This document shows, piece by piece, positions 30,175-47,946 of a stretch of DNA of 64,000 nt (positions are counted from its first letter, which is position 1; every line of letters starts with the position of its first letter). The notes under the pieces are model-generated. The model saw only the letters and a list, made by a program, of their open reading frames with translations, had not been told where the DNA came from and did not search any database. The DNA is from Blastocystis sp. Blastoise (taxonomy: Eukaryota > Protista > Bigyra: Opalinata). The stretch covers positions 1,240,001-1,304,000 of the forward strand of contig JBBPEB010000002.1 in assembly GCA_039096225.1 (NCBI GenBank). The letters run 5' to 3'. Both the position numbers and the translations under genes were made by a program.

Positions 30175-32489
30175 TTATACATAAATATCTAGAATTATTT
30201 CATTTATTTATTTTTCACTTATTTTTCATTTTGCATTATTTTATTGTCGTGTTTTTCATATTTATTTTTTGTTATTAGTTTTATTCTTTCATTTATCTTC
30301 ATTCAAAATACCTGATGATTTATCCATATTCTCGACAAACATAATATATTAAATGCTACATAATTAATCAAATCATTGAACTGTTTTTTCATATTTTATA
30401 AAAATGTCACTTTTCTTTGAAAATTACTATAAAATATATACTAAACCTTATTTTAAAACAAACCTAGCAAAACATTTCAATCAAACATTTCAGAAATAAA
30501 CAAATTTCTAAACAATTTTTGCAAAATAGTTCCTTACTGACTCTGCTTTTTATCTCTATGAATGACAAAAACATCACTATTACCTTTGCCTATCAATTAT
30601 ACATACATACATCTATTCTTAATATGAAAACGAATTGATTTCTTTTTCATTTCTAGAGATGATAAATCCGTAATCTTTGGTAATTACCGATGGAAATTTC
30701 GTCGTAATTTTATATTTTTTCATGTGGAAATTACCACACAAGAATGATAAACCCATGATTATTTCTTTTTTAAAGGGGAAAATTTATAAGTGAATATAGG
30801 TAAATATTCTTCTATTTGACCTTCATCATTTTAAACAGTTCAAACAAGTGGTTGATCAATATGGAGGTGAAAAAGCATATAATGTTGGCATCCCTACATA
30901 GTTATATTGAGAAATTGAATTGTTTAGATCCAGATACACAAGAATACAAATGCCCAATTTGTTTAAGAACAAATATGAAAAATATTACTCGTTTCGTGAA
31001 TCACCTTTCAGATGAATACGTATTCAATAAATCAATCATGACAGATCAACAACTGATACTATGCGAAACTGCTAATTCAATATGTACACATCGTAACCAT
31101 AAAGTGCTTGAAGATAGAAGTAATACAGGTGATACCAATGCAATCTCTTCAAAACAATCTTTTGTAAATACCGAAAAATTTTATCATGATTTAATATGTT
31201 TCTTTTTAACAGCAAGTATATTATATTATATTATATTATATTATATTATATTATATTATATTATATTATATTATATTATATTATATTATATTATATTATA
31301 TTATATTATATATGATTAGATATTTCATTTTCAGAAATCAGTAATAAATATTTTGCAAAAATGTTACAAGACTTGGGTACAGAATGTAAACTACCAGATA
31401 GGCAAAAATTAAGTGGCAAATATTTAGAATCGGTTTTCACTCAAACGTTAAAAAGCCTCGGAGATATTTTAAAGAATGCCAAGCGTGTTTATTTATCTTT
31501 TGATGGTACATCAAATGTTAATCAGGAAAAATATATTAATGTAGTGGCAATCATTGAACATAAACCATATCTCTACAGTATGTATAATGTAACAGACTGT
31601 GGAGAAACGAGTGATACCATTGCTTATATTATTTATGATTGTATATCTCGAATCGGTTTCAATAAAGTAAAAGGAATTATATCAGATAACTGTAGTGTCA
31701 ATATTTCTAGTCGAGAAAAAGTAATCCAGAAAATTCATGATTCTCAGAATAGTATAAGATATAACTAGGGTCACGCCGCAGGTCCGGGGCCTAACGGCAC
31801 CGGACCGCGGCTGCATAAAATAATAACAGTTTGGCTTTTATTTTCTTTTTTTCATTATTATATATTACCTATTATATATTATTATTTATTATTTATTATC
31901 TATTATATATTATATATTATATATTATATATTATATATTATATATTATATATTACTTTAATAACACTTCTTATACTCTATATGGAGAGTTACAATCATTT
32001 ATTGATTGTAATCAGGTTCAATTCCTGATATAAGAATTAAATAAATTCTTTAAATGATATCAAAAAAACTAAAAACAATACTTGAAAGAAAATTAAAAAA
32101 CTATTTTGAATCATTATACATATTATTTATTATTTTTAAAATATATTTTGTATTTAGTAATAATTAAACAACTGTTTAAAACATTCTTTGAGTTTTTAAA
32201 GTCAATAACTTTAGAAATGAGTACCAATGTGAAGTAGTGTAAAGTATTTGTAATTCATAAAATTCATTTAAATAAACGTAATAAAATAATTTTAACTCAT
32301 TTTAATACTTCTTAAAAGAATTTTGAAGTTTTTAGTATAACAAAGTCAGCATTCATTCTAACTTTGACTAATAAAACATGGTTTAAAAAGTTAATATTTC
32401 TTCAGTTGTCTCAAATACTTATTTTAATCATAAATGACTCGAAAAAGTGACTTTTAAATAGACTTTACCCATTCAAGATCCACTGTATC

Positions 32490-33850: not shown

Positions 33851-34265
33851 TAAAACTTTGTTTTAACTATAGTAGTTTGAGGACCTATTGATTACAATGC
33901 TGTAATATTAGTCCACTATAAGAAGATCGAAGAAAATATCGATCACTCAAAAATCGTCCTCAGGAGCTCAAAATTGGTACACCTAGGTTTTTTGACCTCC
34001 TGAATCAGAATATGCTGCCAAAATAAGAATCTAAATTTGACCGTTAAGGCCTCACGTGTTCAATATGAAAAAGTATTAAAAAATAGATAAATATAAAGAA
34101 TAAACACGGATAACGTATATTGTGGGATTGAGAAAAAATCAAGTTTACCCCATGTTTATTTTTCAATTGTCTGGTCAACAATTTTTATCGGGATGATCCC
34201 AAAGAGCCAATCAAAAACGACTCAAAAATCATGTTTTCTGTTTTTCTATTAATTACTTTTTAATA

Positions 34266-37200
34266 TCCTTAATTTAGCAGCCCAAAAGTACGGTGTCTCA
34301 CACATTTTTCGTATTATTGACTTTGTTATTAACTTTTATAAAATAAAAATAACATCAAAAAATCCGGAACACAATTCTAAAAATGACTGTTAAAGAAATT
34401 TTTCGAAAACTCTAAGTTTCTGGCTAAAAAACGCAAAAAACCATTTTCGCACAAAATTTTAACCAAAATTATTGGATTATTTTTATTTTATCCAATATTT
34501 TTCATTTTTATGAAAACACACATTTTTCGTTTTTCATTTTTTATTGTTTTCTTATTTTTCCTATATCTATTCACATACTTTATATTTATTTTTATAAAAT
34601 TAACTTTTATTGACGGGTTGGTCTTATATATAGTTTTGACGGGTAGATTCGTTTATATTTATGACTTGACAACATATCAATACACACATTACTAACTTTA
34701 AACTCTAAAACCATTTCATATGTAATGAATATGACCTCAACTACTCTGAAACAACAATAATTCCTTTAAATAACGACAAAAGACAAACTGATATCCAACA
34801 CATTCCTTTTATATAAACTTATTTGAGCTGTTTTATATTTATTTAACTCTATATCCATCATAAATGTGTTTTATATTTGTCATATACTTTTTAATAAAGA
34901 AGTATTAGCTTTTAAAATTTTTTCTTCTTTGATACCCAATTTTGTGATCTTGATATTTCTGTCAATATTCAAAATATAAAAAAAGTAAAAACATATCTTG
35001 AAACTAGATAACATAAATATGATGCATTTTTAATATTTTATCTAAATATTCAATATTGACTAAAATATCTACGTTTATATTAAAAACATAAAAATGAAAA
35101 TTTTCTAAAAAGGGTATATTTTGTGATTGTGATTTCTCAGTCAATATTTTATAAAATAATAAAGTTAAAACATATTTAGATATAAGACAACCAAAACATG
35201 ATGCGTTTTTGTCACTTTTTTAAATAATTAAAAAATGATGTTACAGGAGACAATAGTTGAACTCAATAAAAAAATAAGGTTCGAAATTTTTCTCAAAACT
35301 TTTTTATTTGTTTTTTGTCAATATTCTCATCAATAATAAATATTTTTGACATTTGACTTCATATTGAATCACTAAATACCAAAATAAACATATTTTACAA
35401 TTTTATTTTGTTTTTAAAAGACTTTGACAACAGATCACCAGACAATGTTAACTCAATAAACTCTTAAAACGTTTCAATTCGTGTTTAGAATCATATATGG
35501 ACACTTTGTGTGACTTATTTGAAAATTTTAAGACAACATGTTGAACTGATACAGACAATGTTTGTTCTAAAAAGTTAGTTATGAGTCATTATGAGTTGTA
35601 AATGTCATAAATAAGCTTTAAATAAATAAATATGTTTTTATAAGTCTTTAATTAGTGAAATAAATCGTTTAAAAAAAGAAAATGTTTTTGATACTATAAT
35701 TTATTTTGACAATTTCTCCATCAATATTAATTTTTAAAAAATAAATAAAACTTATTTATAAAATAGATAACCTATAGTTTTAATATTTATAAAAATTTTA
35801 TCTAAATATATAATAACTTTTGAGATAAAAAATTATATATGCAAAACATAAAAAAATTAATTTTTGAAAAAAGGGTATACTTTATAACATTAATTTCTCA
35901 GTCAATATTTAATTATTTTAAATAATTTTAACAAATAAATATAGAGAATAAAACATATTAATAATATAAGTTTTAATATTTAAAATTAATTAAGAAATGA
36001 GTTTAGTAGAGTCAATAGTATAACATGTTAAAAAACTGAAAATTGAAAAATCATTTTTCTAAAAATTTTCCGAAAGTTGACAAATCAAATTCATATTTGA
36101 CAATTAATTTTTATATATTTGAAAACTAGAGTATATGTGTATTGCATTTCTAAAAGAAATAGTCAAAAGTGGAGTTGAGGAGTGAATGACAAACTGGACA
36201 TGTTGGCTCTAAAGTTGTTAAAAAGTAGTCAAATATGTCTTGAAGGATACATATAGTCTAATGTGTAAATATTACGTCTAAATATCAAATTTTAAGGTTA
36301 AAACAGTTTTGAATTGTGTGTTTACGTGCCTTAAAACAAGAGATTCAATTCACTGTTTGTAAAATTAATTATTAGAGTGTTTAATACTGTTATTAGTCAA
36401 AACATTATTGGAAATAAACGTGGTTGTTTTTTTACCTATGTGTCAAAATGTGTATACTTTTGATTAATAAAGATTAAAACTACTAGGCTGTAGTTATAGC
36501 GTTTATTACATAAATGGTTTTGCTTATCTAATATTATAGATACCCCAAATATATATATATTTTTACAATTTATTATTTATTAAAAGTGATTCCATATATG
36601 AGAATCATAAGTGAATAACAAACTATTACCAGCAGTACTTTATAGCATATTTAATATCAATGACCATGTTTGAGTCAGTCTTAAAAATAAGAATGCATTC
36701 TATAACATGTGTCAACATCATGTTTGTTCAGTTTAGTAAACTACAATGGCTGTAAACGATTACTATGACGTAGGAAGTCCTTTTTATTTTATGATACTGA
36801 CAATTCTTTACTCATTTACGTGTTTTTATTTATCTATTTAAAAAAGCAATACTTTTCAAAATCTGGCTAAATACGGTTTTAGTAATTATAACTAAATTTA
36901 GACTTCACCACAATCAGGATTTACACACACTACATGCTTCCATTTGAAGCTATAAAGTTATTTGATATGATACAAACAAATTGGCGGATTTTGTTCATAA
37001 TTTCTACTACTATGCCTTTATATTTGCTTCTGTTGACTTCATGAATCAAACCAGTGTTAGATTTATAAAATGGATATATTCTTTTTAAATATTTATTTAA
37101 GAAAAGACATTTTAAAACTGATCTTCCAGCTGAAAGTTTGTTTTTTGAAGGTCATCTACTAAAACAAAAACATGGGGAAAAAGATTTTTTCACTCTATTA

Positions 37201-38079
37201 TTTATTATTAACAAGAATATAAGAACTATTATCTTATAAATAATATCTTCTGTCAAAGAAAAACATATATATTAATAAGCTATCATGACATTTGGCAAAG
37301 AGTATTCAAAGAAAAAGCAACACAAAGAAGATATGCAACAACGCAGATCTCAAAGCTGTATGTTTTTCTTATATATCTTACCATTCTGTCACATATTTTA
37401 TTATATATATCAATATATTCATGTTTTATCTTTACATGTATATAGCTCAGCAAGAAATAGATGTATCTCAGGTTTCAACAACAACTGAAGGTATATTCTT
37501 ATACTCCATTATTCTAAATATATAATGTATCTTTAGAATCAGCAGAATCAGTTAATATTGATAAACAGAGGGACAATAAGAAGTCAGAAGATTTAGAGTC
37601 TCAAGACAATGCAGCTCAAAATCCAACTGGGAGTGAAGCTAAACGTAACAATAGCAATATTGCAACAATTGCATCAGGTATATATATTTTATTTCTTTAT
37701 TATAATTTTTTTAACAACACGAATGTTTTAAATATTTTTATTTTTTATATTATATAGTAATGGATTCAATGATTCTATCTATAAGTCAATCGTCAACTCA
37801 AGAAAACAGTCATGTTATAGAGAGTATATATATATCATAATAATTATTAATATTGCATTCATTATTGTCAATTATAATTAACATTATTATTCATATAAAG
37901 ATAATAACAATGTTTTATATATTATTTTTATTTTATTTATATATATATATATATTTTCAATATTTTATTTTATTATTATCTTTGTTATTACTTTATATAT
38001 ATAATTACTATTCTTATACTTATTACTTAGAACAAATAAGTAAGACAACAGATGATTTAATGGCTACAAATAAAGATGG

Positions 38080-38155
<76 letters not shown>

Positions 38156-39228
38156 TATAGCAACAAATAAAGTAGAAAACGTGGGAATAGAAAGTATTTA
38201 CCATTATTAATCATAAATATATCTAAACTATATATAATAATAATATAATCATAATTTTTTAAATATTATATTAAATGAATACTGTATATATATATATATA
38301 TATTTAGAAAAAAAAAGCAGACCAAAATAAATTATTATCTTCTTCAAAAGAATCTATTGATGAATCGTCACTTATTCTTCCATTACCATTATCAAAAATG
38401 AAACATTATAAACCTATATCACTTCCTGATCTTTCACCTGTGCGAGAATGTATATATAATTTACTGTGATTACTTTCTTTTAGAAATTCTTACTATTTCA
38501 TTAATTATCCGCTATTATAATATAAGTATAATTTCAAATCTCGCTACTCTTATTATTATTTAGGTAATAAAAATAATTCTGTAAGTAAAAAGATTTCGGA
38601 TTTGAATAAGCCTTCAAAAGATATTGGTATAACATTTATTATTAATAAATTAATTACTCTCCATAGGTATTAAATCAAAATCAAATAACAATGATTTATT
38701 AAATAACAAGAAATGTACCAATAGTACAGTTAGTATATAATTATTACTTATTTTTTATAATACTTATTTTTGTATAGGTGATAAAAATATTCAGGAAAAT
38801 AAGGAGTTACTTGGCAATAATAAACCTTCAAATACTCCCAGTAGTATGTACAATAGAATATATGTTTATTAATTCTCATATTATTATTTCTATTATTGTT
38901 ACTAAAGTATTCTATTGTTATTTATTTTCATTATATCTACTATTGTTCCTATCATAATATTCTATTATTATAATTTATTTCTTTATTAGTATTATTTCTC
39001 GATACATTATAAGCAAATATCTATTAATATAAAAATGATTACATTAAATATTTAACTCAATATATAACTATATTATTATTCATTTATTATTTTTTTTTAT
39101 TATATCTTATATTAATTATTTATTTTATATTCTAATACTGATATATCTATTACTGTAATATATAGGTATTAAAAATAAAAACAGCATTGTAGAAGCACCT
39201 AAAACCAATAACATTTCATCATTGAATA

Positions 39229-39279
<51 letters not shown>

Positions 39280-42200
39280 AAAAACAATTCATTTTAGATA
39301 TACAAAAAAGTAATACGAATATGGTTTCTTCTCAAATATTAAATTCATCTCAACGTATACATTTTTATTTATTTCTACTATTATTATATATTTATGTTTA
39401 TGTGATAATTATTTTGTAATAATTATTCTTTATTTCTTAAATAGTATTATTACAATTTTTCTATATTATTATTATATTTTTATTTATCAAAATATGTACA
39501 ATTATTAGTATATTCAAATAAAAATAATCATCATGAAACATTTATATTTATATTATATTAATACTAATGAATATATTATTTCTTTTTTCTTTATACATTT
39601 ATAGGTATTCATGATAAAAGTTATAATAATAGATATAAAGAAGATAAAACTCCTAGCGGTATTGATTCAAATGAAAGGAATAAAGAAAAAATAAATAGTG
39701 ATAAAGATTATTTAGGTATATTATTTAAATATATATATATAAGATAATATCTATAGTTCATTCTAAATTTATAGATATAGATCAATCAGACTGTGGTAAT
39801 TTTTATATTTGATAATAATTTTTATTACTTTTCTTATAAATATATAGATGAATATCCAGTTCTTCACAGTTTTTCTTCTGCTCCTCCTCTTGAATCATCT
39901 AAACAAATAGGTATGAATATATATATATATATATATATATTTTCTATATTGTAAATTTTATATTGAAATTATTTTTTTATTTTTTTTATATGAATTATAG
40001 GTATAAATAATGACGATAAAAATGATAATCCAATTGAATTTAAAAAGATATTAAGTTTATCAGATTATGTCTCTTTTAAACAAAAAGAAAGGAAAGAAGC
40101 TATTGATGTAACTAATACTACTACTAATAATTCAAAAGATATATATAATTCTTCTAATATTACTTCTGCTTCTGATAATAAACTTAATGAAAATTCAGCG
40201 AAAGATGGATCGGCGGAAAAGAAAAATAAGAAACATAAAAAAGCAAAGAAACACAAATATGGAAATATATCAAACCAAAATTGTAATACTAATCTGAATA
40301 CGAAGAATTTCTCAAAATATGGTGTTAGTATATCTAACAAAGGTATATATATATATTTTTTATATGAATTATTTATTTTTTATAGGCTATAAAAATGCAA
40401 CAAATAGAATAGAATTCGATAGAAGTACTATGCTGAGCGTTAGTGGGATGCATTATTGTATATATATATAAATATGTATATTATGTATTCATTATTATTG
40501 TTATCATTTTTTATTATTCTAGCTAAAGAAATACTTAATGATTTAATTCCACAAACTCTAGAAGTTTTATCGAAGGTTTTTGGCTTTACAAATTCAGGTA
40601 AGTAATTATATTAATTTCATATAGTAATATATATATAATGTTTCATGAATATGTTGGTTTATTATTATTATTTCTATGACTATTATGACTATTATGACTA
40701 TTATAATTATTTTTATGACTATTCTTATGGATATTTTTATGACTATTTTAATGATTATTTTTATGACTTTTTTCATTATTATTTCCATGATTATTATGAT
40801 TATGACTATTTGAATGATTATTTTAATGATGATTTTAATGATTATTTTTATGATTATATATTTCTTTAGATTCTCTTAATGAGAATAATCATGGGAATGT
40901 CACAAATGAAATAATACTTAGAAATCAAAGCTCTTTATTCAGTTTTAGATCAAATGATGATTCCACTTTGGAATCAAAGATCGATAGTATATATATATAT
41001 ATATTATTTTGATATAATTTAATATTTTTATTATATTTCTTAATATTCTTTTTTTTTAGATAATAAAACAATAAAAAGAACAGCAAGAAATGATATGAAA
41101 GCAAAACTTTTGAAAACATTTTTGGAGAATAGTGACTCTGATAGTATGTACTAATTAAATATATATTTCATATTATAATTTTATTTATTTAATTGTTAAT
41201 TAATTATTTTCTATATTTATTTTTATTAACCTTTTTTTTTTTGAATGTTTTCAAATTAAATGATTGTTTTTTAAATTAATGAATAAAATTTTAGTTTTTA
41301 AAACATTAAAAATATATTACAACATAAGAAATGTTTATATAATAATTTCCATAGTCAGTTTTTAACATGTTTTACTTTTTTTTTCTTTTATTAGGATTTT
41401 TCTTTCATTTAACAATATTTTTAGACTATTCAATAATATATATAGGTGAAAAAAATAAAAACAAAAAAATATCAATTAATGATACTGAAAAACATGTTTT
41501 ATCGACACAGTTGTTCCCTGATTTAATGAGTAATAAAGAGATATTGCAAAGAAGTTTAACACATTATGAACCTAGCTTAACTAATAGAGATTCAAATGAA
41601 TATAATAATAATAGAAATGATAAAAAATATTTTATAGTATCTAATCTCAATAAAACAGATGACAATGAATGTATTTGTTCTGATTATCAATCGGTAATCG
41701 AAAACAATGATGACACTGAATTTAACAAAAATGTTACTGATAACTTTGAGTTCCAAATTAATAATGGTATACACGATTTAATTGATGATGACTTTCATGA
41801 TGAAAAAAATGTTGAAGATTTAAATCAGGATAAAGAAACTATTAATAGTAACAACTCACAAAATAATACTTTTCCAACTTATAACAACATTATTGATTCC
41901 AATGACTTAAATTTGACAGTACATTTGGAAGATATAAATATCACAAACAATAATATAATTGAAAATAGAGAAAAATCATCATCTGAATCAATAATCAATG
42001 ACGAAGCACTTGCTTTATATAATAACATGGATATTATTGATATGAATAATAGTATCTCTAGGAACTTAAATGACATAACGACATCTAATGTTAATGATCA
42101 TTCTGAAGTAACTATTAATGATGAAAATATGATAGAAATGAATGACGTTGAAAATAGGATAATAATAGTACCTCATAGTGTAAATAACTTAATAGAATTG

Positions 42201-45200
42201 GATAATAATAATATAAACGAAGAAAATGTTGCTAACAGCATAAATTTACTAAGTGAACAAAACGATGATTACATAATAAATAATCATGATATTAGTGATC
42301 AATTAACTAATGATGAGAATAATCAAAATCTATCAAGTAATTACAACTTTAATTATATTTTTTTGTTTTTATAACAGTTTTTTTTAATATAAATATATAT
42401 TATATGTTTGATATAATTATGAATTATAAATAATAATATATAGATATACTTCTAGACAATAACGATGAATTAAATAATTTAATTTTTACAAGAAGAGACA
42501 TTTTGGCTTTTTCTCCAATAAGTATGAATAATAGTAATATATTGTTTTTAAATATGAATCTTGAAAAATATTAAACAATTCTTTTATATATAGGAAGCTC
42601 ATATCAAATAATTGATGAAAATGATAATAAGTATGACTATTATGACTTGGGTAAAATGATATTTAAATGTTCATGTTGTAATGCTTTACATTTTGAACAT
42701 GAAAGAAACAACTTTAAGTTTTCAACTAATTATGATACAACATTTTTTGAAGAACCATCAAATTCATATAATGATACAATAAATAATACAATAATATATA
42801 CAAAAAGAAGAAGACAATGGACACTTGACACAGAAGGAAATATTATATTAAAGAATAGTCAATATAGTGGTTGTTGTCGTAGTGGAAAAGTACGTTTAGG
42901 TTCATTATCAGAGCCAGATATATCAATACAAAACTTATTGAATGATAATACAGATTCTTCAAAACAATTTAAGAAAGATATTCGTAGGTATAATAATTCA
43001 ATAGCTTTTGCTTCTATGTCATGTACTGATACACAAACAAGATTAGATAATAATGGAATATATTTCTATAAAGTACATGGAAATATATATCATTCTATGG
43101 CAGATTTATATCCTCCTGAAGGTATTACTCCTAATTATAATCAAATATATATTTATGATCAAGAAGAAGCTTTTCAACTTCGATCAAATAATCAATATTA
43201 TGATAATTTAAATACAGAAATAATGAGAGTATTACATAATTCATTATTAAATAATGAATTAATGAATGCTTTTAAGACATTACATGAAGAAGTAACTACT
43301 GCTACAAATAATAATAATAATCTTCATATATCACAAGTAGATGTTTCATTAAAATTCAAAACATTACATTCAGATGATCAAAGAAGATATAATACTCCTT
43401 CTGCTTCTCATGAAATAGCACTTATAGTTCCTATTAATTCTATGGAAACATTTCCTCATACAGAATTTAGATGCTATCCAAGAATTCATCTTAATAATAA
43501 TAATAATACAAATCATATGAATATGAATGAAGAAATAAGACAACATTTCACAAGAATGAAATATGATAATCCATTTTGTGATCCTATGGTTTATCCTATA
43601 TTTTATCCCACAGGAATTCCATTATTTATTCTTGCATCTAAAAGTGAGTTAAGAAGAAATCCTAATTATATTCCAAGAAGAAATAATAATATAGAAATAC
43701 ATTCTCAAATCAATTCAAATACAATAGAAAATACTAACATTCAAGTAGAACAAATAGAAAGAGAATCAAATAGAAATAGTAGATATAATAATAGAAATCA
43801 ATTATTAGATAATGAAGAAGATGAAATAGATAATGATGATAGAGAGTCTTCAAGACAAACTCATGATGATTTTTCAAAATCAATTACTTTATTAGCTAAT
43901 TATCAACAATTTAATAATGAAGGATATCCTATAGATTTAATAGGAAATCCTGTATATGAGAAATCATCTTTTACTTTAAAAGATTTTTATTCTTTTCTTT
44001 GTTTTCCAAGATCATTTCCTAATAAGAATTATTTCTTATCAGGAGGAAAATTATTCTTACAATATATTGTAGATGCTTATTCTAAAATAGAAGAACAACG
44101 ATTATCATTTATAGAAATGAATCAATCAAAATTAAGAGCAGAATCTTATAATGTGTTACGACAATATAATCAGAGAAGAAGAGAACAAGTAACAGATGAA
44201 GAAGTAACAAATGGAATAGGAAAACCTATTATATTAAATAGTGGTTTTGTAGGAGGACCTAGATATATGAAAGGAGCTTATTTAGATGCAATGACAATAG
44301 TAAGATATTATGGTAAACCAGATTATTTTATTACTTTTACATGTAATCCAAAATGGAAAGAAATAGTAGATAATTTATATCCTAATCAAGAAGCATGGGA
44401 AAGACCTGATTTAGTTTGTAGAGTATTTGCAATTAAATTGAAATATTTATATCATTTATTAAAAGATGAGAATGTATTTGGTAAAGCACAAGCTATTACT
44501 TATACTGTTGAATTTCAAAAGAGAGGATTACCTCATGCTCATATCTTATTGAATGTTGAACAACAAGATAAAATACATGATACTAATGAACTTGATTCTA
44601 TTATATGTGCTTATCTTCCTGATGAAGAAAAGAATCCTAGATTATTTAAAATAGTAAGTACAATGAATATACATGGTCCTCATGTATCTAATTCTCCATG
44701 TTTAGATTCTCATGGAATATGTAAGAAAGGATTTCCTAAACCATTTCAAGAATGTACTACAATTCCTAATGATTCTTATCCTTTATATTTTAGACCAAAT
44801 GATGGAAGAAAAGTAGTATTTCATCGTACTAATGGTGATTTAGAAGCTACTAATGAATATGTTGTTCCATATAATCCATATTTATCACTCAAATTAGAAG
44901 CACATATTAATGTTGAAGCAGTTTATAGTTTACATACAGTAAAATATCTATATAAATATACAACAAAAGGTCATGATTCAATGAGAGCTGAATTATCAGC
45001 TTCTTCAAATGAAACAAATAATAATGAAGTTAAACAATATTTAGATGCAAGATATATATCATCAACTGAAGCAGTTTGGAGAATATTAGGATTTCCTATA
45101 GTACAATCAAATATAGCTGTTCAAATATTATTGATTCATGATGAGAATGATAAGAATATAGTATATACAGATGGTTCAGAAGAACAAGCAGAAGAAATAC

Positions 45201-47703
45201 AAGGAAATAAATTATCTATGTTAGAAGCATATTTCAAAGCAAATGATGATTTAAATAATCATTTATATGTTCCTACTTTAGAAGAACCAGAGTTTATGAC
45301 ATATGATATGTTTCCTCAATATTATACATGGTGTAAAGGAGAACATATATGGAAACCAAGACAAAAGAATTCGAAGACACTTGGAAGAATACCTTATATA
45401 AATCCAACTAATAAAGAAGCATTTTGTTTAAAATTATTATTAACTCATGTAAATAGACCAACAAGTTTTGAATCATTAAGAATGTATGATGGAGAATTAC
45501 CTTATCCAACTTATGAAGGAGTATGTATAGCAAGAGGATTATTAGATGATACTAATGAATATAGACATATATTAGATGAAGTAATGCATGATTGTCATCC
45601 TTCTCAATTACGATTAGTATTTGCTTTATTATTTGTATATTATAATATTACTGATAAAGCAATGGATTTATGGAATGAATTTAAATATGAAATGATTTCT
45701 GATATATATTATCAATATACAATAGATCATTTTACTATAAATGAACGTATTAATCATTCTCTTTCAACTGATCCTGATATTATTGATCAAGATCCTATTG
45801 TAATCAATTATTGTTATCCAAGAGCTTTATATAATATCAAAACATTAATAGAATCAAATGGAGGTAAATATACTAATATGCCTACTATTCAATATACTTC
45901 ACATTTTAATCCTAATAGTGGTGTTTCTACATTAGAATTTTATGATTTTGATGTTGCACATAGAGAAGCAGAAAGAAATTATCAAATGTTAAATAGAGAA
46001 CAAAAAGAAATATTTGATAGAATTATGGTATCTGTTAATAATACTCAACCTCATAATAATAATATGTTCTTTATTGATGGTCCTGGTGGAACTGGAAAAA
46101 CATTCTTATATAATACTTTGATCAAGATGATTCGTACAAGAGAAAAACCTGTATTAGCTGTTGCATTCACAGGAATAGCAGCTACTTTATTATCAGGAGG
46201 AAGTACTTCTCATTCTGTATTTGGATTACCACTTGATCTAAATGAAATGTCTATTTCACATATAACAAGAAGTAGTGCAAAAGCAAATGATTTAAGAAAA
46301 TGTGCTATTATTATTTGGGATGAAGCACCTATGGCTTCTATTTATGCTTTAGAAGTTCTTGATAATTTATTACATGATTTATTTAGTTCAATAGATTCTG
46401 AAGATCCATGTCTTCAATATCCTTTTGTTGGTAAAACTATTGTTTTAGGTGGAGATTTTAGACAATGTTTACCAGTAGTTAAAAATGGAAATGAATCATC
46501 TACTGTTGGTGTATGTTTGAAAAGATTTAAATATTGGAATAATTTTATACAATGTCATTTAGTTCAGAATATGAGAGCAGATAGAGATGCTTTAGATTTT
46601 AAAGAATGGTTAATGAAAGTAGGAAATGGTGAACGATTAAATAATGAATCTGATTTGAATGATAATATTGTAGAAATACCTTCACAATGTATAAGTACAG
46701 AAAATTTATATAAAGAGATATGGGAGAATATACTTCATAATAGAAATATTTTATCAGAACAACATAGAAAAGATTTATCTGAGAATTGTATTTTATGTTG
46801 TACGAATGAAGATACTTTTGATATAAATGAGAAAGTATTAGATTTAATACCTTCTTCAGAATCAGAAAAAATATATTATAGTTTTGATACTTTAGAAGAT
46901 GAAATAGTTAATGATTCTGAAAGAGCTGCTTATTCTCCTGAATTTCTTAATACTCTTCTTCCTCAAGGATTTCCTCCTCATAAATTAAGATTAAGAAAAG
47001 GCTGTATTATTATGTTATTGAGAAATCTTAATATAAAGAAGGGTTTATGTAATGGAACAAGATTAGTTGTTCTTGAAACATTAAATAATGTTATTCGTGC
47101 TCAATTATTAAATAAGCCAGATAATTTATTACCTGGTGAAGATATTGTATTTATTCCAAGAATCAGTTTAATTACTTCAGATGATTCACTTCCTACTAAG
47201 ATGAGAAGAAAACAATTTCCTGTTCGATTAGCTTTTGCTATGACTATTAATAAATCACAAGGTCAAACATTTAAAAATGTTGGATTATATTTAAAGAGAC
47301 CTGTATTTAGTCATGGTCAATTATATGTTGCTTTTAGTAGAGTTCGTTCTTTTAATGGTTTACATATTTATGCTGAAAATTGTAATAACAATAATCAAGG
47401 ACATCTTAGTAAAGACTATCCTAATAAGGTATTTACGACTAATTGCATTTTTGATGGAGTTTTAAATTAGTTATTGTTTTATTTGTTTTATTTGTTTTTT
47501 GATTTCTTTTATATTTGTTATTGTCTGTTAATATATTTGTTTTTATTTATTATTTTTCTCTTTTCAATTTTTATTTGTTGTCTTAAAAGTTAAATATAGA
47601 ATATTCTATTGTTTTGTTAAAACTTAAAAACCAAAAACTAAAAATAGATATTTTAAAATAAAACTCAAGCGTAGGCCTGCGTAGGCAGGCCGTGAAACGC
47701 TTG
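34266..47703 (+). mobile_element. Helitron B, apparently autonomous (13.4 kb)
   Basis: Starts A|TCCTTAATTTAG, ends hairpin GGCCTGC-GTAG-GCAGGCC ... CTTG|T. Encodes an uninterrupted RepHel. Confidence 0.93.
37285..47470 (+). CDS. Helitron Rep/Helicase, about 23 exons, about 2500 aa (core in the single last exon 42594-47470)
   Basis: Zn motif CSCC..HF..CC..GKV; Rep motifs FITFTCNPKW, VEFQKRGLPHAHIL (HUH), YLYKY; PIF1-type helicase GPGGTGKT, DEAPM, GDFRQ, TINKSQGQT, HGQLYVAFSR. The core is certain; the upstream exons are a hand-built in-frame model. Confidence 0.9.
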
Positions 47704-47946
47704 TTAAATATAAATAATATCGCTTAACCAAATATATGGTGCACAACTACATGTTATATCCTATTGAACTGTGTTTCAACGAAAAGTTAACTCCCCGTAA
47801 GTTTAGAGGAGTTGTGGGTACAAACTCTAGTATATAGTAGCCAATCAAATGAATTTTCCAAAAACTGACCAATGGGAATTTTTTTGCCTATTCTCATATA
47901 TATAGTAATGATAGTATACAGCCACCTGAATATGAGCCAAAAGGTA

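Follow-up and report, generated by a model that had tools for sequence, protein, structure and literature searches.

A Helitron of Blastocystis sp. Blastoise carries a long arm of short exons, separated by phase-1 introns, upstream of its intronless RepHel exon

Canonical Helitrons, such as Helraiser and the plant and fungal families, encode a Rep nuclease (Helitron_like_N) and a Pif1 helicase in one protein. They begin with TC, end in a 3' hairpin, insert between A and T, and occur in many copies with differing flanks. Transposase genes are usually compact. We analyzed a window of 64,000 nt (contig JBBPEB010000002.1, positions 1,240,001 to 1,304,000) from Blastocystis sp. 'Blastoise', a tortoise-gut protist with a genome of 33.3 Mb in 34 contigs and ~22% GC. 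The region 34266–47703 (+) of this window is one copy of a multi-copy autonomous Helitron, referred to as Helitron B. It shares the above features, as well as a Cys-rich stretch directly after the internal ATG of its Rep–helicase (RepHel) gene. In contrast to canonical Helitrons, it has an orphan arm of ~900 aa, encoded by ~21 short exons with all-phase-1 introns, in front of the intronless catalytic exon, and its 3' end is CTTG instead of CTRR. A preliminary description made from the letters of the window had stated that no Helitron with this layout was known. The Helitron literature that we found describes no such phase-1 exon arm, and the genome paper (PMC12129017) does not mention Helitrons, but the genes were already annotated in GenBank as hypothetical proteins of 2485–2510 aa.

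In human genes, disordered regions encoded by symmetric exons have been described (Schad, Kalmar and Tompa 2013, PMC3632108). The arm resembles such genes, and the modules of Patthy-type 1-1 exon shuffling, in that a low-complexity region consists solely of phase-symmetric exons and whole exons can be dropped or exchanged in frame. Unlike the metazoan host genes, it belongs to a DNA transposon of a protist, and tandem duplication, the usual origin of such arrays, is only faintly supported. The exact, scarless GT..AG deletions among copies and the confinement of introns to the 5' half of the gene are shared with cases of reverse-transcript-mediated intron loss, and the genome holds a reverse transcriptase of the long interspersed nuclear element (LINE) type. 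In contrast to those cases, the losses are found among paralogous, nearly identical copies of one active transposon.

We consider it probable (about 0.6) that this is a real spliced gene, in which ~21 short exons and one optional exon encode a low-complexity arm of ~900 aa attached to the intronless RepHel, with the uniform phase imposed by constraint and the arm evolving exon by exon. We infer splicing from RNA-seq-guided public gene models and from precise intron losses; the sequence of events and any role of the arm are inferred as well.

The exon chain was joined with local scripts from the ATG at 37285 through RepHel without stops, encoding 2526 aa with 22 introns, all of phase 1; the chain proposed in the preliminary description was thus reproduced. 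All of its exons lie on the forward strand. Exon 1 (37285–37357) carries the ATG and ends in phase 1, and exon 2 (37446–37490) is symmetric 1-1. They are followed by exons 3 (37537–37677), 4 (37758–37823), 5 (38031–38078), 6 (38161–38193), 7 (38321–38449), 8 (38564–38626), 9 (38667–38732), 10 (38778–38843), 11 (39166–39228), 12 (39298–39354), 13 (39605–39715), 14 (39757–39795 with the acceptor of the public model), 15 (39848–39910), 16 (40001–40342; 342 nt), 17 (40386–40457), 18 (40523–40597), 19 (40870–40986), 20 (41060–41143), 21 (41446–42336; 891 nt, N/D-rich), 22 (42444–42521), and 23 (42594–47470). The local splice model and the public model P0015 agreed for exons 1, 2, 4, 5, 8–10, 12, 13, 15, 16, and 21. 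Two exon starts were shifted by one base relative to the preliminary description (41446 for 41447 in exon 21 and 42444 for 42443 in exon 22). Every listed exon start is preceded by AG, every exon ends at a GTA-type donor, and the introns have the form GTA...TAG. All internal exon lengths are divisible by 3, with equal flanking phases. The arm holds about 22 introns in 5.3 kb compared with none in the 4.9 kb of RepHel, and the GC content is 26.4% in the exons, the same as in RepHel, and 12.2% in the introns.

The catalytic part is intronless, as previously described, and forms a single 4.9-kb exon with a phase-1 acceptor (exon 23). Pfam domains Helitron_like_N and PIF1 were detected in the open reading frame (ORF) 42647–47470: PF14214 (Helitron_like_N; E = 4.9e-56) covers residues 448–635 of the RepHel exon and represents the Rep/HUH endonuclease domain, and PF05970 (PIF1; E = 4.5e-61) and the 2B domain PF21530 represent the helicase, C-terminal to Rep. 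Substitutions at codon positions 1, 2, and 3 of RepHel amounted to 0.47, 0.60, and 1.87%. The sequence is conserved as coding from the acceptor onward, through the internal ATG (42656), and the peptide between the two is conserved at the protein level in three lineages. A second Helitron family (family 2), present in many copies with a RepHel ~50% identical to that of Helitron B, has its last intron at the same site and in the same phase as the RepHel acceptor of Helitron B. The long exon upstream in family 2 has no ATG in four of the six copies, yet it is open and conserved.

The phases do not reflect the choice of exons made in the preliminary description, because the phase-1 frame is the sole open frame in 18 of the 21 internal exons. 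A frame-blind exon-chaining script, trained on the codon use of RepHel alone, recovered the same phase-1 run in the arm and gave mixed phases in unrelated DNA. As this script over-predicts in repeats and joins neighboring genes, it was used only to show that it has no phase-1 bias. In the 5' region of family 2 (L027:5300-7300, L028, and L030), a tandem array of ~80–110-bp units was read by the script as false 27-nt phase-1 'exons', showing that repeats can mimic the pattern. The script also predicted a phase-1 intron at 31216–31319, in the hAT-like element surrounding the Helitron; this is a single case and was given no weight. The host control, also that for low-complexity regions, covered the 64-kb window: a strict sample of 35 introns there was distributed over phases 0, 1, and 2 as 14, 11, and 10, in line with the earlier statement that neighboring host genes mix phases. 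If phase 1 has p = 0.31, finding it in 22 out of 22 introns has a probability of about 7e-12. The sampled host introns carry the same GTATAT...TAG signals as the arm introns, whatever their phase; for this reason, a preference for G at exon position −1 was rejected as the cause of phase 1.

The window DNA translates exactly to the GenBank protein P0015 (2503 aa, 22 exons), and the sister copies have public models within the size range given above. The annotation pipeline, probably the one applied to this assembly, retained only transcripts with RNA-seq-supported introns (PMC12129017). A search for sequencing runs returned one possible RNA run, which contained a fraction of 0.21 of the words. 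P0015 differs from the chain above in ending exon 6 at 38171 (38161–38171), starting exon 7 at 38308, and omitting exon 22. It starts exon 14 at 39757, compared with 39775 in the preliminary description, both acceptors being phase 1. The claim that all introns are phase 1 holds for the chain of the preliminary description, but P0015, a model for the same copy, contains one phase-0 intron with a weak GTAGAA donor, created by cutting exon 6 at 38171; the usual donor of the family is GTATTT at 38194. The cause appears to lie in a run of 9 A after a TAG acceptor (38308–38316), which has 8 A in the sisters L014 and L016. Copies with 8 A use the TAG that precedes the run as the acceptor of exon 7, and their public models are all phase 1; with the 9 A of the window copy, the usual junction from 38193 to 38308 shifts the frame. 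The frame can be rescued either by the phase-0 GTAGAA donor of P0015 or by the CAG acceptor at 38320/38321 chosen in the preliminary description, which keeps phase 1. The additional A could reflect either a genuine defect or a homopolymer error of nanopore sequencing. The models P0019, P0018, and P0001 have phase-1 introns only; no record of an encoding contig was found for P0001.

The public models of identical copies also differ by whole exons. Exon 11 is a cassette that is omitted from P0017 and P0018 although its DNA is intact, and this difference indicates that frame-neutral skipping is at least tolerated. Exon 22 is open and symmetric with good splice sites, and its DNA is intact in the copy of P0001; nevertheless, it was found in none of six public models. 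A small exon related to it is used in a diverged element with another arm (variant 3, described below).

Helitron B is an active rolling-circle transposon. Its limits were placed at ~34260–47704 by flank searches and refined to 34266–47703 by reading both ends, using the sequence shared among sister copies, the 3' flanks of ten copies, and the 5' end. The 5' TC preceded by A, the hairpin, and the T following the 3' end were found in 10 of 10 copies, and the terminal hairpin with the CTTG end (47666–47703, +) is common to all copies. At least 10 full RepHel copies were 98–100% identical. The 3' flank was different in each of the ten copies, which identifies them as independent insertions, and in at least five copies RepHel is accompanied by the 5.6 kb that precede it. 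One copy of Helitron B was found nested in intron 4 of another (L006/L021, G000:C20:34435-41741), at the equivalent of window position 37837|37838, with the intron-4 arm sequence resuming in its 3' flank. The 5' non-coding arm of the window copy (34266–37284, +) is 64 bp shorter after 36836 than that of its sisters; the 64 bp are present in at least six sister copies and are deleted from the window copy. This indel was ruled out as an intron, the deleted piece having no GT..AG ends.

Comparison of the copies revealed differences in intron presence. Over 4.7 kb, the five youngest copies differed by one substitution, a few microsatellite steps, the 64-bp non-coding deletion, and three precise GT..AG indels. 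The latter correspond to three polymorphic introns, all of phase 1: an extra intron of 40 nt after 37605 within exon 3 (present in L015, L016, and L023), an extra intron of 43 nt after 38398 within exon 7 (present in L014, L016, and L017), and the 40-nt intron 8 (38627–38666, +), which is exactly missing from L018 and L021. The alignment of the 43-nt indel is unambiguous, and the piece is annotated as an intron in P0001. Intronization of coding sequence was rejected as their source, because none of the lengths (40, 43, and 40 nt) is divisible by 3 and the intron sequence is entirely missing from the alleles without it. Introner-like gain, in which new introns are copies of a repeat, was not supported either: no full-length match to the three introns was found in about 150 kb of the genome, and one of them resembled only TA microsatellites. 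In the diverged C5 variant (L026), exons 17 and 18 are fused in frame without an intron. Since this intron is present in Helitron B, variant 3, and family 2, its absence represents a precise loss in L026, for which the direction is resolved. Exon 20 is likewise fused with the next exon in family 2. The data fit precise intron loss that is ongoing in individual copies and fuses neighboring exons.

The phase pattern was also followed into diverged arms. Variant 3 (P0003, mapped on L033) has 21 annotated introns, of which 20 are phase 1. The remaining 'intron' is 192 nt long with GTT...GAG ends and hides one in-frame stop in a long exon; we regard it as an annotation work-around, and variant 3 was therefore counted as 20 of 20 phase 1. 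The all-phase-1 layout is thus kept in two diverged versions of the arm and is a property of the lineage. The preliminary description had suggested comparing exon number and order among RepHel copies; in this comparison, the layout was retained in the diverged arms, but exon content and introns varied. The elements are mosaic: the N-terminal halves of Helitron B and variant 3 show no similarity, the RepHel exons are 95–99% identical, and the switch in identity lies inside the last intron.

The N/S/K/D-rich character ascribed earlier to the extension was confirmed by its computed composition (N 16%, S 13%, K 9%, and D 9%), with I also abundant, and possible disorder was judged from this composition and from a low-confidence AlphaFold model of one segment (predicted local distance difference test score, pLDDT, 48), for which no confident fold was obtained. 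This segment is a core of ~110 aa, encoded by exons 17–20, that is 40% identical between Helitron B and variant 3, is recognizable in family 2, and ends in a basic patch (exon 20) that looks like a nuclear localization signal. In the arm, substitutions reached 1.86% at codon positions 1 and 2 compared with 2.80% at position 3 plus introns (z about 3.4), and the arm is under weak purifying selection. The core matched no Pfam family, and no relative outside the Blastoise genome was found among 1.84 billion representative proteins; within the genome, it matched only at loci beside Helitron RepHel genes. Word searches with the core and with exon 21 returned only the genome's own proteins, and a search of Atlas gave scores of ≤0.80 only. 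The protein-search queries were P0001:1-425, P0001:468-600, P0001:470-906, or P0003, and for local BLAST of the arm DNA, the sequences on either side of 40218–40254 were used as separate queries.

Several further observations were made. The public model P0013 (WA158_003266, contig C14) consists of the variant-3 core alone (188 aa), which suggests arm-only transcripts or a truncated copy. In family 2, the homologues of exons 19 and 20 flank a well conserved block resembling an exon (L027:8364-8491), which ends in an in-frame TAA and lacks a GT donor; this block may be an alternative terminal exon yielding an arm-only protein. Intron 18 contains a minisatellite (40659–40862, +) that matches, at ~75%, dozens of tandem ~200-bp arrays on many contigs. 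An ORF of 461 aa with motifs like those of reverse transcriptases of non-LTR (long terminal repeat) elements adjoins a family-2 Helitron (L027:1138-2523) and is a genomic source of reverse transcriptase.

These results can be explained by the reading frame of RepHel. This essential exon has a phase-1 acceptor, which recurs unchanged in a family with a RepHel that is only 50% identical, and any exon born, inserted, swapped, or skipped upstream of it would have to be 1-1 symmetric. The uniform phase would then arise because RepHel must stay in frame behind its phase-1 acceptor, as bookkeeping rather than design. The arm would have been built and rebuilt exon by exon, through accretion and through recombination within introns between element lineages, and not by the insertion of introns into existing exons. 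Random intron insertion would yield phase 0 and phase 2 introns, which were not seen, and this fits accretion and intron recombination. Neighboring exons would later be fused by precise intron loss in individual copies. Exon accretion, one of the possibilities raised in the preliminary description, agrees with the frame-neutral exons, the precise intron losses, and the different arms on nearly identical RepHel exons. The same description's modular cassette of frame-neutral exons is upheld by the 1-1 exons, exon 11 being in or out, the unused exon 22, the precise losses, and the arm switch, but not in the sense of a regulated device.

Other observations weigh against this explanation. No birth of an exon was seen directly. 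The usual junction of exons 6 and 7 is disrupted by the 9-A run, and P0015 contains a phase-0 intron with a weak donor, so that the window copy itself may be defective, unless the extra base is a sequencing error as considered above. The use of the junctions and the continuity from exon 1 to RepHel rest on public models built with multi-mapping reads. The three polymorphic sites have no outgroup from which gain could be told from loss, and repeat polishing may exaggerate the near absence of substitutions between copies.

The phase could simply have been inherited if the arm had grown from a single primordial 1-1 exon, duplicated in tandem together with its intron. Arrays of symmetric exons in disordered proteins usually arise in this way, and the principle is documented for human genes (PMC3632108). 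Exons 8–12 measure 57–66 nt, and a similar opening (G/S, then I/D/N, then K) is found in several of them as well as in exons 13, 16, and 21; the short arm exons of Helitron B have a mean pairwise similarity about 2.6 standard deviations above composition-shuffled controls. However, the best exon pairs scored no better than shuffles, the exons of variant 3 showed no excess similarity among themselves (z = −0.4) or to those of Helitron B (z = −0.1), and the arm introns are unlike each other beyond the splice signals and TA repeats, which leaves this origin unlikely. Selection for the uniform phase itself, as an alternative-splicing cassette that provides RepHel isoforms with different arms or as host-like splicing that shields the transcript, was similarly judged improbable. 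Public models of identical DNA either include or omit exon 11, the intact exon 22 goes unused, and the 188-aa model P0013 comprises the arm only. On the other hand, the isoform differences reflect one chosen transcript per locus with multi-mapping reads, in two of them (exon 6 cut at 38171 or 38180) the gene predictor seems to have rescued the frame of 9-A copies, and host introns carry the same signals in every phase. No evidence of regulation or of escape from silencing was found. Both the purpose-built splicing device and the splicing camouflage put forward earlier are accordingly disfavored, the former showing no sign of regulated isoforms, with its uniform phase explained by the RepHel frame, and the latter showing no sign of evasion.

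It is highly unlikely that the arm and RepHel are two genes fused by the models, with RepHel starting at ATG 42656 as a typical 1604-aa protein. All known domains lie within the ORF from 42656, and shorter models exist (P0002 with 1677 aa and P0013 with 188 aa). Against this, protein conservation extends upstream of the ATG to the acceptor in three lineages, the long exon of family 2 is conserved and open even in its ATG-less copies, and seven public models join the arm and RepHel; the open frame extends no more than 27 codons upstream of ATG 42656, with which a start there would still be compatible. Capture of the 5' portion of a host gene with pre-existing phase-1 introns is the least probable origin and would be surprising. 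Helitrons often capture pieces of host genes, and the arm introns look like host introns, but the 5.6 kb of arm DNA matched only Helitron copies and satellites, and the core matched neither a Pfam family, nor loci away from RepHel genes, nor proteins of other genomes in the search above.

A bolder and rather doubtful proposal is that intron loss is unusually fast in Helitron B, because the single-stranded DNA copies of rolling-circle transposition would meet the abundant spliced mRNA of the element itself. RNA-templated repair or replication could then delete short introns (40–43 nt) without a conventional retroposition step. If the proposal were true, such intron losses would be recorded naturally in the all-phase-1 arm, which would also be a platform on which Helitron lineages could swap arms in frame.

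Few stretches of the host genome are as dense in introns as the arm of Helitron B. Owing to the uniform phase, every arm exon is frame-neutral, and the arm can grow, shrink, and be swapped in frame. The lineage-specific conserved core in a Helitron transposase has nuclear import or interaction with a host partner as candidate roles. Near-identical independent insertions with exact intron differences are a rare natural series for the rate and route of intron loss, and the same series addresses exon birth inside the introns of AT-rich genomes and the shuffling of protein arms by intron recombination, with an essential downstream domain staying in frame.

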